64,000 nucleotides of DNA from NCBI RefSeq assembly GCF_033153115.1, contig NW_026889759.1, positions 3,100,001 to 3,164,000 on the forward strand. Reading direction: 5' to 3'. The position numbers were made by a program, and so were the translations under genes. Below the pieces are notes generated by a model that searched no databases, was not told the DNA's origin, and saw only the letters and a program-made list of their open reading frames with translations. Of this stretch, positions 1,332-63,235 are shown piece after piece (within the stretch, counting starts at the first letter, position 1; the number at the start of each line of letters is the position of its first letter). This stretch comes from Saccostrea echinata. Taxonomy: Eukaryota.

Positions 1332-4300
1332 TTACACGGATATCTGAGCAAATCTGTACTGCAGTGTTCGGGGATTTCTAATTAAAACAAGATTCCGCTG
1401 ATAAGGTAGAGATTGATGTAGTTTTTCTAAACCTAGCAGGGAACAGAATCCCTTCCCAGCTCCCTGCCCACTGCTTAATGAAAATCCACCATGCTTAATA
1501 TACCCAATGACTTCCCTATCACCATCATCTACACTCTCCAAGTTGTCTGCTTTAATCTCTGGTGTCTTTTTTGGTGGTAGATTTAAGATACCTTTCTTAA
1601 ATAGTTTCGCTTTTCTTCTTTTCTCTTTCTTTTCCTCTTGCTGAGGGTCTGTTTGTTGAAGTTTAATTGGTCCAACAAAAAACCCGTCAGCTTTCATTCT
1701 ATTGACATCTTCCTTTGTTGGTATGGAGATAGTTCCCATTTCTTCAGGACAGCCTTTGGAATTCATCGCTATTTTGACGTAAACCAATGATTGTTTGTGT
1801 CTACTAATGATGTCTTTGAAGGAGGCATGCGATTCCTCATCAATTCTATCTTTCAAACATTTCTTGTTTTTCCCAGAAGCAATATTAAATACTTTCCTCA
1901 AGGTTTTGAGATCATTTTTTTCTCTTAACACATAAAAATCCTTGCTATCATCTTTCTCATCAACCAGTTCATTCCATGCCCAACTGAATGGGTGAACCAC
2001 ACCTAACTTGGTGAAGTTTGGTCTTTTGGCAGGAGGTCGTCTGCTATGCTCAGCCTCTTTTTCACTCTTTATCCTGTTTTCTTCTGCTTGTCCTGCTGCT
2101 GTATCTGGGAAATCTTCTGGAAAGTGTTCACCCTGTTGTTCATTGGCCAGGCATTGTAATTCACGCAAACCTCCTGCTCTTGCCCCATGATAGATACTGG
2201 CTATCCAGAATGCCATGCTCCATCCTGCAGGAAGGACTAGATCCCATCCACTCCCATAGTGACTGTGGTTCATGTCTGTGGGATTGATTCCTTCTTTCTG
2301 AATGAGAAGAACAGGAATCCTACTTTCATCTTCCCCTAGTATTAACTCTGTCCCTAAAATAATGTACCATAAAAAATCAATATCAATTATGGTAAAAACA
2401 TGTTATGAGTCTGTGTAATCAATTACAAAAGATTTTACACAATACCCTCCTTTGAGTAACTTGTCCCTGCAGCAAATTAAGAGGCAATTCCTAAGGAAGT
2501 CCAGATAATGGCAAACATACTTGCTTAACAACAAAATAATACTGTAAACCAACTTTTATTTGCAAGTTTTATGACCTTTTCTTAGCATATATACCCCCCC
2601 CCCCCCCCACACACACACACACACAAATGTTATTTAACAGTTTATTTATGTAGAATTTTTCATCAGTTACTAAAATTAGTAGTTGCAGATGGATTTCAAA
2701 CTGATGAATCATAAATAAATGTGGTCATGAATAATAGTTGGTTTACAGTACATGTATTATTATAGTATTACCTACAGAGAGTAAGTTTTCACTGAATCAC
2801 TGCATTCTTCACAAACCTGGAACAATATGTTCTGATTTCAGCTGATTGATTTCAAAGTCTGACATTTTTGTTGAAATCACTGTCTTCCTGATTTCTTCCT
2901 CCCATAAGGGCGAAGAGGAGATGTCCTGGCTGATCTTCAGTGCATTGGCTCCTGTATCATCAGACACCATGGGCTCTGAAGTTTCTAAAATTGATGTTTG
3001 ACAAAGACCATTATTACTCTGCTAAACTGAAAATTCAAATAGCTTTCTAGAATATCTCTTCAGATTGATACATACTAAGTATACCTCTTTGAAAATTGTA
3101 TTCTTTTTCAACAAAAGAAGATAGAGGAGATAGGATATACATTCAAACTTCGTTATCTCAAACGACATGGGATCAAAAAAATCCTTGGATATCTCAGTTT
3201 TTTCTCGTTCTCAAAGTTTTTTCTTGAAGAGATATCAAAGGTAAAATGCTAAAGGAATATGTGGTTGGGACTTCCAAATCACTTTGACATATCCATGGTA
3301 TTCGAGATATTGGTGTTTGAGATACCAAAGTTCAACTGTACAATGAACTTGTCTAACCGGACACCACTGGTTCCAGAGAAATTTGCTATATTTGACAACA
3401 TTTTGGATTATACAACATTATAAACAATGGCATTTACTGAAAGGGACTAAATATCTTCATTGAAATAGGCAAGATTTTGGCATACATGATATCTGAATTA
3501 GTTTACTTTTACTTTAGTACCTTTATTTGCCAAATCATTCCATTTCTTTGCTTTGATGACTCTAGGATCTCTGACAGCCAGACCAATAACACTATGGGGG
3601 GACAACTCTGCAGCAGACTGACAATGACACACTCCTTCCCAGAATTCCCTCTGCTGGTTAAAGCCCAGAGAGTGCTTTTGGTCCTGGAAGTACTGTTTCC
3701 ACCAGTGAGATGGTTCACTTTTGTTGAACATGATATCTGCTATCTGGAGAGTTTGTTCCAGAACTTTCTGGGACTCTGGTCCAATATAGCGATGTCTCAC
3801 AAGTCTGTCTTTCAAAGAGGTCATCAAGATCTTCCCAATCTGAGATTTTCTGTTCACTACCTTTATTACTTGCTCCTCAGTTGGTTTCTGAGTCGTTTCC
3901 TTTTTACCTTTTTGTTGCTTCCCCTTACCCTTGTATTCACTAAATGTCCTACAATTATCATCTGTTTTCTTTATCTCCTCCCCATCCTTCTTTCCAGTTT
4001 GAATCTCTTGTTTTTCAGAATTATTGTTTACAGGAGATTTATCCTTAAGTTCTGATACATTTTTCCCTTTTCCCATTTCATCAACTGGACAACTGACTTC
4101 TACAGAAACATCCTGTGCTGCACAGTCTTCTGTATGGGAAAAACTAGCCTCTAATTCCTGCCACAGTTCATTATAGGAAGCAGGATGACACCAAATCCAT
4201 AGCTGACGAAGAGGGTGTGATTCAGACGTGGGTCTCCAAAAGAAAGTGACTGGGCCAATGGCACCCAAAGGATACTGACCTTGTTTGTACAATACACAGC

Positions 4301-56840: not shown

Positions 56841-57931
56841 TTTAGCTCACCTGAGCTGAAGGCTCAAGTGAGCTTTTCCGGTCGAAGGGTGTTCATGTCT
56901 GTCGTGTGTCGTCTTTCAACTGTCGTCTGTAAACTTCTACCATTTTCGACTTCTTCTCAAGAACCACCAGGCCACTTTCAACCAAAGTTGCTAGAAAACA
57001 TCCTTGGATGAAAAGCATCCTTCAAATGAAGGGCCAAGCCCTCTTCCAAGGGGTAATACTCAGTAATAAAGAATTCGTGAAAATTTAATGGCATCTTTTA
57101 AAAATCTTCTTCTCAAGAACAAATATGCCATTAAAGATTACATAGTGTAAATTCAAATTTATTCCGGGACTAGGATGGAGCTACAAGGGGCGATCAAAGT
57201 TTTACATAGGATTATTATAGGGAAAAATCTTTATAAAAATATTCTCAAGAACAGGAAGCCCATGATTAGTCATATTTATATGGAAGCATCCTCAGGTAGA
57301 TAAGTGTAGATTAAAGTTTGTTCAAATCATGTTCCCTGGGGCTAGGGTGGGGCCACGATGTGTGATCAAAGTTTTACATAGGAATATACAGGAAAAATCT
57401 TTAAAGAACAGCAAATCCATGATTAGTCATATTAATACAAAGGCATCCTCGGATAGTGTAGATTCAAATTCAAATCCTGACCCCTGGGAGTGAAGAGGGG
57501 ACACAACAGGGGATCAAAGTTATATATATAAGAATATATAGGAATAGTCTTTAAAAATCTTCTCAAGAACTGCAAAGCCATGATTAGTCATAATAATACA
57601 GAAGCGTCCTCAGGTAGTTTAGATTCAAGTTTGTTCAAATCATGACCCCCCCCCCCCCCTTTCCCAACCCGGAGGTATGGCGGGGCCACAACAGAAGATC
57701 AAACTTTTACATAAAAATAGGTAGAATTTTATTTTTTAAAAAATCTTCTAAAGCCATGATTAAACAAAGTGGAAACATCCTTCATGTGTAGATTAAAGAT
57801 TGTTCAAATCACGACCTCCTGGGAAATAGGATTGAACCACTTTATATTTAAACTTTTCAATAATGAACTGATTTCTGCTTTTCTCCAGCCAAAGTGTTCA
57901 GGTGAGCGATGTGTCCTATTGGCTTCTTGTT
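56841..57931 (+). mobile_element. Complete HINE with ~170-bp satellite-like units, same subfamily as 39564-41432
   Basis: 5' TTTAGCTCACCTGAGCTGAAGGCTCAAGTGAGC and 3' TCAGGTGAGCGATGTG..CTTCTTGTT. It shares the distinctive tail TTTATATTTAAACTTTTCAATA.TGAACTGATTTCTGCTTTT. Confidence 0.85.
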
Positions 57932-58352
57932 CAATATATTAGAAGCGTGATTAATCAGAAATTTTGACCCCTCTTACAATTTCTAATGTAATATGATAGT
58001 ACATGTACAATAAAAACTTGACACATGAAGATAAACATGCAGGAAGAATTAATAACCATGCTTTACAACACCAGGTTGCTAGTGGTATGGATTGTTTATC
58101 TAGAACTTCGACAGAGAATTTCCATTCATCCATTACTGGATACATGTATTGCACAATCTTCAAGCATATTGCTTGCATTCTCAATTCAAATCAAAGACAT
58201 GAAGATTGTTCTCTGATATAAAGGTTATATTTCTTATCAAGCATTGTATTTAATGCTGTAATATTGTAATTTAGGAGACATTAAATGGGAGGACTACCAA
58301 ACATACAAATATGGAGACAAACTCTATGAGGGAAGAATGGATTTGGCTTTAA

Positions 58353-60092
58353 GAGCCATTCTCTGTAACGACTTGAACTTTTATATAGAAGCTGTGGCAC
58401 GCATAGTCTCAGAATTTCTCCAAACTCTCTATGATAAAAGTCTTTGATACCGTAAACTCAGATCAGGCAGAAATTGGTTGCTACGTGACATGGTTACCAT
58501 GGCAACATGTCCTAAAGTTTGAAAAATGGCATTTTTCAACATCTTCAGAGTCCCACAGTTAACGTTCGCAGCAAAGCAAACAAGTGGCAATGACTGTTTC
58601 TGAAAGTTGAAGGCCTGGTGTCTTAAATGCATGATAAACATGTTTGGTAAATCATCTATAACATACGTTACTATGGAAACAAAGTATTCAAAAGTAATAA
58701 TTTTGTTCATTTAATTTTATAAAGTCATACACTTAAGAATAAAAAACAATTATAGGTTGAAATGCAAGCAATTAATAGAGAAGAGATCCTTGTAACATAT
58801 ACCTAGGACAAAATATGATATTTCTTATAGGTTGGCAATGGTTGCCATGGTTTTAATACCACGAAGGGATTTTAAATTTACTCTCTTAGTGTTTTAATCT
58901 TATCCTATCTTTTTAAAAAGCATATTTCTATATAACTGATGATCAATTTTTAAAGGCCTTGGTGTGACCCTAATTTTCACATTTCAAAAAATTCAATTTC
59001 AATTCTTTAAATAGTGCGTTGCTATGGAAATAAGGCGAAAAAACATGCATAAAAATCTGAAAAATACTCGGTTTCCTTGGATACGTACAGTTGTATGTAG
59101 ATTCCCAAAACTTTAATGATTGATATATGTGAACAACTAACCTGACTTTAAGTTTTGACTATCACCCAATCTCTAACTGGATGCAAGAAGCTGGCACATA
59201 GGGTCTAATATTGACAAAAAATTAACAAAATCGAACATTTTCTCTTCTTGGTAACCATAGCAACAGTGTTGTATTTTTCAATAAACTTTATCAATATATG
59301 ATATTCAACTTTAGTTCTACGAGATAAGTACTATTCAAGGTGATTCAAATAATATTTTTCTTGATTAAAAGGTTAGTAAATACCCAAAGCAGCAAAAAAA
59401 TATCACTTTAAACAACTAGTACGTTGTTCCCATGGTTACACTGCAAAGTAACAATTAATCTCAATTTTTCTTATGTTGTCGGTGTTGCAAGGTCCTAAGG
59501 ATGTATATGTGCCAGTCATGAATTTTATTGTATTTCCTCAAGATAGTAGCATTAACCCAATCATAGCAACAGATTTTGCATGGTGACACTGTGTTACCAT
59601 GGCAACGATGAAAGTTATTTTTAGAATAATATTGCCAATACCTAATTACATGAGGTCAAATATTTTTCATTGTTTTTCTTACGTTGTTGATTGAGTTTGA
59701 TCATGTAACATCTATCATTTGTGACTATAAAGCGTTTTTCAGCATTTTTCAGCATCTAAAATGTATTCCAAATGTACCCATGGTTACCACTTACTTAGAG
59801 ATTAATTCTAAATAGTTTCTTTATAGCATAAGTGGCAACAAGGTGTCATGTTTTTGGGAGAATGGTTTGTTTGTTTTTCTTAGTCTTTAATAAGACTTAA
59901 TAAAGATTTAAAGTAGCTGAAAATCTCAATTTTTTCAACTTTTCTGGCTGTTACCATGGCAACCAAGACACATAGCAACGAAATTTTATTTGATATATGT
60001 TTCTTGTGTCAAGTTGTAATAATGGGCAAAGTTTCATCAAAATCGGTGACCATGCGTGGCAAAGAAGTTTAAGTGGTTACAGAGAATCGCTA
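58353..60092. mobile_element. 1.74-kb non-autonomous TTAA-targeting DNA transposon (Kolobok/piggyBac-type TSD) rich in X-box palindromes
   Basis: TTAA at 58349-58352 and 60093-60096. TIRs AGC.ATTCTCTGTAAC.ACTT.AACTT. Removing it rejoins the pseudo-exon of CYB5RL. Confidence 0.88.
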
Positions 60093-61221
60093 TTAATTAC
60101 CCAAAATATGACCCACAGACAGTAACTCAGGAACTTTTTGTCGTGGTCTGTGGGAAATTTTTTTTTTTGAAAATTAATACGACTGAATACTGCAAACTTC
60201 TCAGTTTTAAAGATAAAAACAAAATGAAAGATATTACAGTTACCCACTTTGTGTTTTCTATATTGAGAGAAAGAGTTCCAGCATTAATATTTTAAGTGAA
60301 CCACCCCATGAAAATGTATTGGACACTTTTAAGAAGTAAAAAACATACACAAAAAGAAGTGGAAATTTGATGAAACCCTATGTTGACAAAAAATTGATCC
60401 ATCGGGAACAAAAACAACGCGAGGCCTTGATTTCAAAGGTTTATTTTTCAACATATATTGAACAGCTGTGCAGTTCATGAAAGTTTTTTATGACAACTTT
60501 ATACCACGATGAAGTTACAATTGATGAACACAGTGAAAAAACTTCGATAAATAAGATACAATTTCGACCTGCTCTTTCAGTTTAATGAAATTTGATCACT
60601 ATTTTTGTACCTCTGTCCTTAAGGTTGTTATAGTGAGATCGAGTTTAGCGCTTGTGTGATTCCTTTCTATGGGTGAACGATTTAAAAACAAGTACGCATA
60701 ACATATTATAAATTTTGTGCTTATTTAAACATCTGAGATTTGTGCATCCAGTTTATTGTACTTAGCCGACATGTATTTGTCCTTGGCAGTTTTTTGCACT
60801 TTTGGATTTACTTTCGCGTCTACTAACATCGGTATGTGTTCGCTTTCATGTAAATTATTACATTCAATAATTTGTAATTTGCAATGACTTTCCGATGTAC
60901 AGATTCATCTGAAATGCATAAAAATTTATATTAGGATAAAAAGATGAATGATCAATAATGTAAGCATTGGATTGAGATTTTCTTGCCCCAGTATTACCGG
61001 TATATTCTTAAACTCCGCCTTCTTTGAAGGTTTATCATTATCTAGACATCCAGGCAACAGCTCCATTTATTATAGGTAAAAATAAATTTGTGTACCTTAT
61101 TCAACCTGTTTGATTAAATATATTCATTTCTCGTAAGAAGTTTCAAATACAGACATGTATCTCAAGTAAAGTTAAAATTTGCTAAGTGAAACTTTGATAT
61201 CTCGAATACTAGAATGCTTCG

Positions 61222-62450: not shown

Positions 62451-63235
62451 CAAGCGTACATCAATTAGTGCACTAAAAAATTTAGCGCAATATTCATCTT
62501 CAACTGAGTAGCGTAATCATGAAATAGCGCGCTAGAATCTAAACAACGGTATGGGTAAGTTTTAATCGTACATTAGCGTGTACATAATAATTTTGCAGAT
62601 GACCAATCATAAGATATGAAAATTTACGAGTTCCATTTTTACTGGGAAAGCAGTTGTCTACGATGTCAAAAAAGCCTGCTCTTTAATTTTTCGTGTGGAA
62701 TAGTTGTATAAAGTGTAGATAAGTCATATGTTTAAATGTTATTAATCTTTGAAAAGTTTTTGAGATTTTGATTTTTCCTTTGCGTATTTTTAGAATCTAC
62801 ATTTGATTTGCACCACTTCTAGCTGCAGAACTGTAGCGTGTTTAGTCTTTGACTACGCTACAGATCCCGTAATGCAAATATGATGCAATTTACGGTGCAA
62901 GATTTTCTGCGCACGGTTGGGGAGAATTTGTCCACTTTCCAGCATTAGTCAATCAACTACCTTTTATTCCCAAATTCTAGACATATTCTTTAATCAACGT
63001 ATATGTTTTATCCACCTACTAACCCTGTATAGTCGTCTCTACAGACCAATAAACTCGCTTATTTTGATTTTTTTCGGATGGCAGAAAATTTTAAAATGAT
63101 AGCTTTTAGGTCGTCATTTTGAACTACAGTAACATCACCAGTAATAAACGAAGCTCATCTACAGCGGTCAGTTATAAAGGTGGCTCATCTACATCTGTCT
63201 AATAATAAACGTAGTTCATCTACATCGGTCAATAA

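Follow-up and report, generated by a model that had tools for sequence, protein, structure and literature searches.

In the 64-kb window of Saccostrea echinata DNA analysed here (positions 3,100,001 to 3,164,000 of contig NW_026889759.1; numbering below starts at the first letter of this stretch), the interval 58349-60096 holds one full copy, 1748 bp counting both TTAA, of a TTAA-inserting transposon family that carries ten 14-bp palindromes resembling the X-box bound by RFX proteins. Among the copies compared, these motifs, and these motifs alone, are kept constant while the spacers between them drift, and because they change far more slowly than the intervening DNA they are, judging from the sequence comparison, almost certainly working protein-binding sites. 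Our preferred reading, to which we tentatively give a probability of roughly 45%, is that a dimeric protein with the specificity of RFX, most likely a host RFX protein, binds the palindromes as cis-acting sites, and that these sites are retained for the help they give the element in spreading.

A preliminary description of the window, made from its letters, had already reported the palindromes, and they were recovered where it had placed them: the exact form GTTACCATGGCAAC at 58493, 59593 and 59950, six variants and two separate CATAGCAAC half-sites, to which a tenth site at 59071 is now added (Table 1). Searching with GTTNCCATGGNAAC and up to two mismatches gave 11 matches in the window, nine of them inside 58493-59963, while 100 shuffled sequences averaged 2.35 matches and none reached 11, the highest count being 9. 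The strict consensus GTNRCC-NN-RGYAAC was matched four times in the window, always within the element, against 0.07 expected, and GTTRCY half-sites numbered 22 in the 4.8 kb around the element (17 of these within it) against 7.05 expected. The published RFX X-box consensus is GTNRCC N0-3 RGYAAC, with GTTRCY as the monomer site, and RFX specificity is described as conserved from fungi to animals (PMC10530576). Four of the ten palindromes match the full consensus, seven have at least one strict GTTRCY half-site and three have none, so that at the level of sequence the proposed X-box likeness is borne out. Genome-wide, GTTRCCATGGYAAC sites number 4666 versus 5 for the control, a large share of them supplied by the element family. 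Near the start of contig C1 (C1:14458-70478), a perfect GTTGCCATGGCAAC recurs every ~2.65 kb, each unit of this long tandem array holding one X-box.

The palindromes are also regularly spaced. In the family consensus they start at 145, 319, 492 and 669, four sites phased with the left end, and at 722, 902, 1077, 1244, 1425 and 1601, six sites phased with the right end, from which they lie 147, 323, 504, 671, 846 and 1026 bp when counted inwards. The gaps between neighbouring palindromes are thus 174, 173, 177, 53, 180, 175, 167, 181 and 176 bp, with eight of nine falling within 167-181 bp (mean 175.4, standard deviation 4.4), which none of 2,000,000 random placements did. The short gap marks the place where the two half-arrays, each in phase with its own end, meet 53 bp apart.

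Constraint on the motifs was assessed in 37 of the approximately 1200 copies, comprising 29 of the window's subfamily and eight further copies drawn in contig order from left-end matches and not for likeness. Among the 29 copies, non-CpG differences from the consensus affect 27 of 3973 motif cells (0.68%) versus 762 of 44089 spacer cells (1.73%), and none of 2000 random sets of ten 14-mers had a level as low as that of the motifs. Nine palindromes lie below the mean spacer difference and site 2 lies above it, and the deficit persists for C, G and T separately and with CpG removed. Singletons number 14 in 137 motif sites versus 368 in 1522 spacer sites (p 5e-4). When the ten sites are averaged, diversity forms a trough at exactly motif positions 1-14 and is back at or above the mean of 0.046 one base outside; within this 14-bp footprint the most variable positions, 3, 4 and 9, are those that are degenerate in the X-box consensus, a further likeness to the RFX site (PMC10530576). 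When non-overlapping 14-mers are ranked by variability, the 12 at the low end include seven motif sites and both terminal inverted repeats (TIRs). Furthermore, none of the 40 best-supported variant places in contigs from four public runs fell inside the ten motif windows, where about three were expected.

The eight copies taken in contig order revealed subfamilies ~7% apart, which extends the comparison to older divergence. The consensus sequences of subfamilies 1 and 2 differ at 2 of 140 motif sites versus 82 of 1559 spacer sites (p 0.047), both motif changes being swaps among X-box-compatible forms, and three divergent copies set against the subfamily-1 consensus show 1, 0 and 0 changes in 137 motif sites versus 91, 80 and 82 in 1519 spacer sites. 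The test of motif against spacer decay that the preliminary description had suggested therefore favours function, with motifs changing ~2.5 times more slowly than spacers within the subfamily and far more slowly between subfamilies.

The element itself is best explained as a non-autonomous cut-and-paste transposon inserting at TTAA, and it is non-coding, as no open reading frame (ORF) is involved. A search of the organism's own 923-Mb assembly yielded 2250 first-look candidates and 40 scored full-length copies at 94-100% identity, all 40 of which align from query base 9/10 to 1757, corresponding to 58348/58349-60096, and a left-end 24-mer with up to two mismatches gave 599 + 581 = 1180 genomic matches versus 0 for the reversed control. 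Among 30 fetched copies, TTAA flanks the right end in every case and the left end in all except L013 (TAAA) and L027 (CTAA), and the flanks are unrelated to one another apart from the pair L028 and L030. These two copies (C1:28113042 and C44:4622048) have identical flanks on different contigs, reflecting either a duplicated segment or a locus assembled twice, and were counted once in later comparisons. Copy L018 sits in a repeat that has an uninterrupted paralogue in the window (62582-62763, a copy of another repeat family), in which the flanks of L018 join at one TTAA (62683-62686). Since this paralogous empty site carries a single TTAA, the 4-bp duplication is demonstrated and not merely deduced from the flanks, and the initial description of the element as a TTAA transposon holds.

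Contigs from the four runs, which are labelled as three coded organisms, cover only the element, with diverse sequence beginning exactly at 58348 and 60096, and the family is therefore common to at least three labelled organisms; in organism C it is more diverged, 145 of 186 contigs being less than 95% alike. We describe the family as young. The terminal inverted pair of the element (I1) is 32 nt long and 88% complementary, and behind it the two end modules match each other in many copies (bases 10-187 with 1592-1757, at 66-69% identity). A short derivative of ~330 bp, in which 58505 is joined to 59957 (seen as a joint in runs X2 and X3 and as a loose end in X1) across 28 other letters that separate the palindromes, retains only these two end modules up to their palindromes. 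At C5:18438954, 18443100 and 18447295, three left ends of the family follow each other in the same orientation in ~4.17-kb steps, placing the element inside a larger tandem duplication. Directly upstream of the element in the window, 57500-58210 contains several direct repeat pairs (D3, D5, D11 and D15) with a spacing of 169-186 bp, and run contigs pile up at 57900-57986; this upstream stretch is probably another decayed periodic repeat.

Table 1. Coordinates of the transposon copy, its ends and its palindromes in the window.
Feature	Position	Strand	Sequence or remark	Basis
Full transposon copy	58349..60096	+		full-length genomic copies, left-end pattern count, contig limits
Left TTAA target-site duplication	58349..58352	.		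TTAA in 28/30 copies; empty site
Left terminal inverted repeat	58353..58372	+	core ATTCTCTGTAA	inverted pair; core common to families A and B
Left end module	58349..58526	+	TIR, inner conserved block, palindrome 1	inverted relative to right end module
Palindrome 1	58493..58506	.	GTTACCATGGCAAC; strict X-box match; 145 bp from left end	same position holds a palindrome in related families
Palindrome 2	58667..58680	.	GTTACTATGGAAAC	pattern search, family consensus, constraint test
Palindrome 3	58841..58854	.	GTTGCCATGGTTTT; one strict half-site	invariant in 37 copies
Palindrome 4	59018..59031	.	GTTGCTATGGAAAT; last unit phased with left end	pattern search, consensus, spacing
Palindrome 5	59071..59084	.	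GTTTCCTTGGATAC; first unit phased with right end; missing from the preliminary list	
Palindrome 6	59251..59264	.	GTAACCATAGCAAC; strict X-box match	pattern and consensus search
Palindrome 7	59426..59439	.	GTTCCCATGGTTAC	surrounding unit (~59360-59494) still homologous to end module
Palindrome 8	59593..59606	.	GTTACCATGGCAAC; strict X-box match	pattern and consensus search
Palindrome 9	59774..59787	.	GTACCCATGGTTAC	pattern search, consensus
Palindrome 10	59950..59963	.	GTTACCATGGCAAC; strict X-box match; 147 bp from right end	pattern, spacing, consensus
Extra half-site	59562..59570	.	CATAGCAAC	half-site count
Extra half-site	59971..59979	.	CATAGCAAC	half-site count
Right end module	59931..60096	-		self-match, end alignment, profile search
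Right terminal inverted repeat	60073..60092	-	core ATTCTCTGTAA on minus strand	inverted pair; fetched copies; end alignment
Right TTAA target-site duplication	60093..60096	.		TTAA in 30/30 copies; empty site

The origin of the array becomes clearer from related elements. The pattern of TTAA, five free bases and the core ATTCTCTGTAA, excluding the own family's first base, gave 472 matches versus 5 for the control and led to several families, of which family A (ends CATGC/CACGC, 6-17 kb) has GTTGCCATGGAGAC 145 and 147 bp from its ends, with a 1.8-kb derivative (L062) keeping the palindrome 145 and 146 bp from the ends, and family B (ends CATCA, 4-5 kb; copy L063) has palindromes 134 and 156 bp from its ends. 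The end modules of the element can be aligned with the ends of both families, and in an alignment of eight ends the palindrome is a conserved island amid moderately conserved surroundings, while an 11-bp insertion tells one end from the other. These relatives are non-coding as well: the family B copy L063 contains no ORF of at least 70 amino acids, and the only long ORF in a family A copy belongs to a nested piggyBac. Comparison of the ends shows that the palindromes descend from one subterminal site, which related families keep ~134-156 bp from each end. Because this palindrome is found that far from either end in two related TTAA families, both of them non-coding, the array probably grew by duplication of the subterminal module. 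It would have arisen through tandem duplication, to which the module seems readily prone, of an end module of ~156-175 bp with one palindrome, after which the duplicated modules of this family would have kept only the palindrome and their length in common.

The spacers retain little of such a history. Tandem Repeats Finder reported no long-period array, local alignments among the units score at shuffle level (null mean 18.2, maximum 30) with the exception of the two end modules, which align in inverted orientation with a score of 55, and head-to-tail units of the element could not be aligned with one another. The earlier statement that the spacers are unrelated is therefore largely correct, and a recent tandem repeat was rejected on the same grounds. 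Compared in register without gaps, however, the units are 0.301 identical in the same and 0.317 in the inverted orientation, versus 0.284 and 0.283 (standard deviation 0.006) out of register, and the unit around site 7 matches the end-module profile over ~130 bp (nhmmer E 7.5e-5). In addition, a young 156-bp satellite with one GTTGCCATGGTTAC per unit occupies bases 546-881 and 3242-3927 of locus L052 (C30:26245132-26249211), where it is split by an inserted transposase-encoding piggyBac; its unit shares homology with the family A interior (E 1.4e-23) and a weak similarity with the end module (E 0.002). Because unit 7 is homologous to the end module and a related module forms a young satellite, the preliminary description was probably wrong to take the unrelated spacers as an argument against tandem amplification. 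Concatenation of whole end modules was rejected as the origin of the array since internal TIR cores are absent; the element contains two sequences like the TIR core, where shuffles average 1.2, and each of the two lies at a tip.

As to the superfamily, the TTAA target-site duplication fits both piggyBac and Kolobok. TIRs of piggyBac start with CC[C/T]T (PMC2872659), and the resident piggyBacs of the same genome begin with CCC or CTC, whereas the element ends in GAGCC and TAGCG and its relatives in CATGC and CATCA. Kolobok termini are given as 5'-RR and YY-3' (PMC9587614), with which the left GA of the element agrees while its right TA does not, nor do families A and B (CA...TG). Sola2 was rejected, its duplications being described as AT-rich AWWT and not strictly TTAA (PMC3627910). 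The identification of an autonomous transposase had been proposed as a check, and none could be tied to the clade: no autonomous relative with DDE_Tnp_1_7 between the same ends was found among the 30 of 123 transposase matches examined, of which only L032 has the TIR core. This locus (C22:19094590-19104090, L061 and L032) is a 9.5-kb family A copy with long inverted arms, interrupted by a nested 2.67-kb canonical piggyBac that has its own TTAA, CCCTTGTACTGC TIRs (CCCTTG) and an intact transposase ORF of 595-620 amino acids (PF13843 318.8 bits, PF13842 25.4 bits). The copy was rejected as autonomous partner because the ORF belongs to the nested piggyBac with its CCCTTG TIRs. With the insert taken out, family A is 6.8 kb long, non-coding and framed by long inverted arms, and it includes 180-196-bp tandem repeats that lack the motif as well as roughly two units of the motif-bearing 156-bp repeat; the C22 copy also contains 128-146-bp tandem repeats.

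A family of intron-poor, transposase-like genes proved to be the source of two weak RFX-domain hits in the genome, both lying at the N-terminus. The ORF of L072 (C33:15397933-15398424) matches PF02257 with 28.1 bits, the cut-off being 27, and the 401-amino-acid ORF of L073 (C43:1885196-1886401) with 19.9 bits, other family members scoring 19.9-25.8 bits; further matches lie at C9:41.25 Mb, C54:18.80 and 24.98 Mb, C29:20.96 Mb and C81:2.01-2.02 Mb. Homologues in clam, pearl oyster, scallop and mussel match PF21787, the RNase H domain of P-element-like transposases, with 31-57 bits, and one of them is annotated with PF02257. A profile built from 5 members found the DNA-binding domain of RFX5 at E 8e-6 and RFX1 at 0.014, one built from 10 members found them at 8e-5 and 0.12, and neither profile matched a solved transposase; protein P0003 likewise had no match to a solved transposase or in NCBIfam. 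A predicted model of modest confidence (mean predicted local distance difference test score 64, 70-78 over the domain) shows a winged helix, for which the Foldseek E-values were all weak (>=0.012) and RFX5 gave the tightest local fit (root-mean-square deviation 2.3 A over 59 columns, 24% identity). The RFX-like N-terminus was present at six loci and the core was matched at 72 places. Together, profiles and model suggest a low-copy, divergent family of transposase-like genes with a putative RFX-type winged-helix N-terminus. No such gene was located at the clade ends listed on contigs C1-C9, neither the TIR core nor an X-box was present in the 1.3 kb upstream of one of these genes, and two full-length relatives on metagenome contigs had no TIRs or X-box arrays nearby; in these upstream, contig-end and metagenome checks none of the genes could be connected to the X-box element clade.

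Considering who binds the palindromes, the reading with host RFX would involve selection among element lineages, in which copies with intact sites go on to transpose. Whichever protein binds, selection must act through the element's own spread, because the sites can serve a non-coding element in no other way and because host selection on ~12,000 sites is implausible. Host RFX, for which the genome has RFX domain genes (10 matches), might be drawn in to maintain the accessibility of the element or to aid assembly of the transposition complex in cells where RFX is abundant, and one site per ~175 bp would fit a single site for each nucleosome repeat. Second in likelihood as binder would be a transposase with its own RFX-like domain. 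We rate host RFX slightly above the transposase because an unrelated transposase site is unlikely to equal the X-box by chance (1-3%, a rough estimate).

Several observations weigh against host RFX or against the constraint on which this reading depends. A fixed distance from both ends is usual for transposase sites, and we know of no non-autonomous DNA transposon that needs a host transcription factor in cis. Sites 59071, 59426 and 59774 have no strict GTTRCY half-site and yet are among the least variable, which would be odd if RFX affinity drove selection. The constraint sample is biased, covering 37 of ~1200 copies with 29 picked as best matches to the window copy; shared variants (5 motif versus 129 spacer alleles, p 0.058) are weak alone, as is the comparison of subfamilies 1 and 2 when CpG is left out (2 of 137 versus 75 of 1520, p 0.09). 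At site 8 (59593) the motif is intact in 20 of 24 copies versus 18 and 19 of 24 for two neighbouring 14-mers, so that the motif effect does not show at every site.

It is quite possible, if somewhat doubtful on balance, that the palindromes are instead sites of the element's own transposase, like those bound by the cysteine-rich-domain dimer of piggyBac, with extra copies selected because they raise transposition and with the X-box likeness due to chance or to an RFX-type domain. Three related families have the palindrome at a set distance from either end, and this agrees with such a role, as does the ~330-bp derivative that keeps just the end modules up to their palindromes. So does T. ni piggyBac, whose transposase protects palindromic repeats at 17-33 of the left end, 45-61 of the right end and, internally on the left, 180-196 (PMC5861402), and binds as a dimer whose activity is stimulated by added binding sites (PMC7351741). 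Against it stand the autonomous partner that was not found among the 30 transposase matches examined, the rough 1-3% chance of exactly matching a 12-base host-factor consensus, and a palindrome that is unlike the terminal repeat, while the TIR core is absent from the interior; in a test for subterminal repeats of the inverted repeat/direct repeat (IR/DR) type, the inner palindromes did not repeat the terminal binding-site sequence. The presence of transposase-like genes (PF21787) with an N-terminal RFX-type winged helix in this genome and in other bivalves would explain the likeness without chance, if the palindromes bound a transposase whose usual DNA-binding domain was swapped for an RFX-type winged helix. 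We consider this specific version unlikely; such genes are few and mutually 30-57% identical, and none lies at a clade end listed on contigs C1-C9.

Compared with these, it is very improbable that the copies serve as host regulatory DNA, that is, that many insertions were co-opted as RFX-dependent enhancers of ciliary or sperm genes with motifs held by purifying selection on the host, as the preliminary description had partly envisaged. Singletons are also depleted in the motifs, and the family supplies a large share of the genomic GTTRCCATGGYAAC sites, both of which would be expected here; however, with 29 copies sampled a singleton may also have arisen before insertion, and it is implausible that selection acts at ten sites in every one of ~1200 young copies. 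The motif is moreover kept at a fixed distance from the ends in families that are otherwise wholly different, which points to the element's own needs. Equally hard to sustain is the absence of any function, in which low motif variation would be mutational or technical and the regular spacing a relic of an old tandem repeat. The spacers are indeed AT-rich and of low complexity, and the array does appear to derive from tandem duplication, but neither accounts for a deficit that holds for C, G and T separately and without CpG, for a 14-bp trough with sharp edges at ten different places, for gaps that stay at 167-181 bp even though the spacers have diverged past alignment, or for a motif conserved between families with differing flanks.

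Non-autonomous TTAA elements with repeated internal binding motifs are an already known kind; what is unusual here is a motif identical to the site of a host master regulator, a ten-fold phasing on nucleosome scale in diverged DNA, and measurable selection on the motif. Usual X-boxes are single and lie within a few hundred bp of the start of a ciliary gene, whereas those of the element are mobile and come ten per copy at ~175-bp spacing, three of them without a strict half-site. With T. ni piggyBac the element shares the TTAA duplication and subterminal sites that are palindromic, one of them ~180 bp in from the left end (PMC5861402, PMC7351741), and the 11-bp difference between its left and right spacers near the tips recalls the 3-bp versus 31-bp asymmetry of piggyBac; it differs in its termini (GAGCC/TAGCG, not CC[C/T]T), in having no piggyBac transposase tied to its clade, and in half-site and spacing, which are TGCGT-N7-ACGCA in T. 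ni. Bivalve non-autonomous Kolobok elements are similar in their TTAA-specific duplication, their abundance in bivalves and a tendency to long or composite ends, yet only the left GA of the element agrees with 5'-RR/YY-3' (PMC9587614). Coral CMITEs, TTAA MITEs (miniature inverted-repeat transposable elements) with an internal region better conserved than the TIRs, are also non-coding, form tandem arrays, conserve an internal part between families and are suspected of a role for it in transposition (PMC2872659); in the element, conservation is limited to a 14-bp palindrome present ten times that matches a known host-factor site. The Caenorhabditis elements CERP2 and CELE2 are high-copy MITEs with a defined regulatory motif as well, but theirs is one germline promoter motif pair shown to be co-opted as promoters (bioRxiv 10.1101/2022.01.21.477252), while the element has ten phased palindromes. 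In the literature searched we found neither X-box arrays in transposons nor an RFX-domain transposase; Repbase and the supplements of PMC9587614, with bivalve Kolobok consensus sequences, lay outside its scope, and the family may already be catalogued.

If a host-factor site, or a transposase mimicking it, drives the spread of the family, the element would be a concrete case of mobile DNA choosing the cells or the chromatin state in which it moves, and would show how a genome can become strewn with binding sites, by the thousand and ready for use, for a master regulator of ciliary and sperm genes. Should the binder be a transposase with an RFX-type domain, a transposon family would have copied the specificity of the ciliogenesis regulator, scattering thousands of phased genuine X-boxes at which host RFX and transposase could compete or cooperate. 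The ~175-bp phasing also makes the element a natural test bed for whether nucleosomes are positioned by a bound factor.

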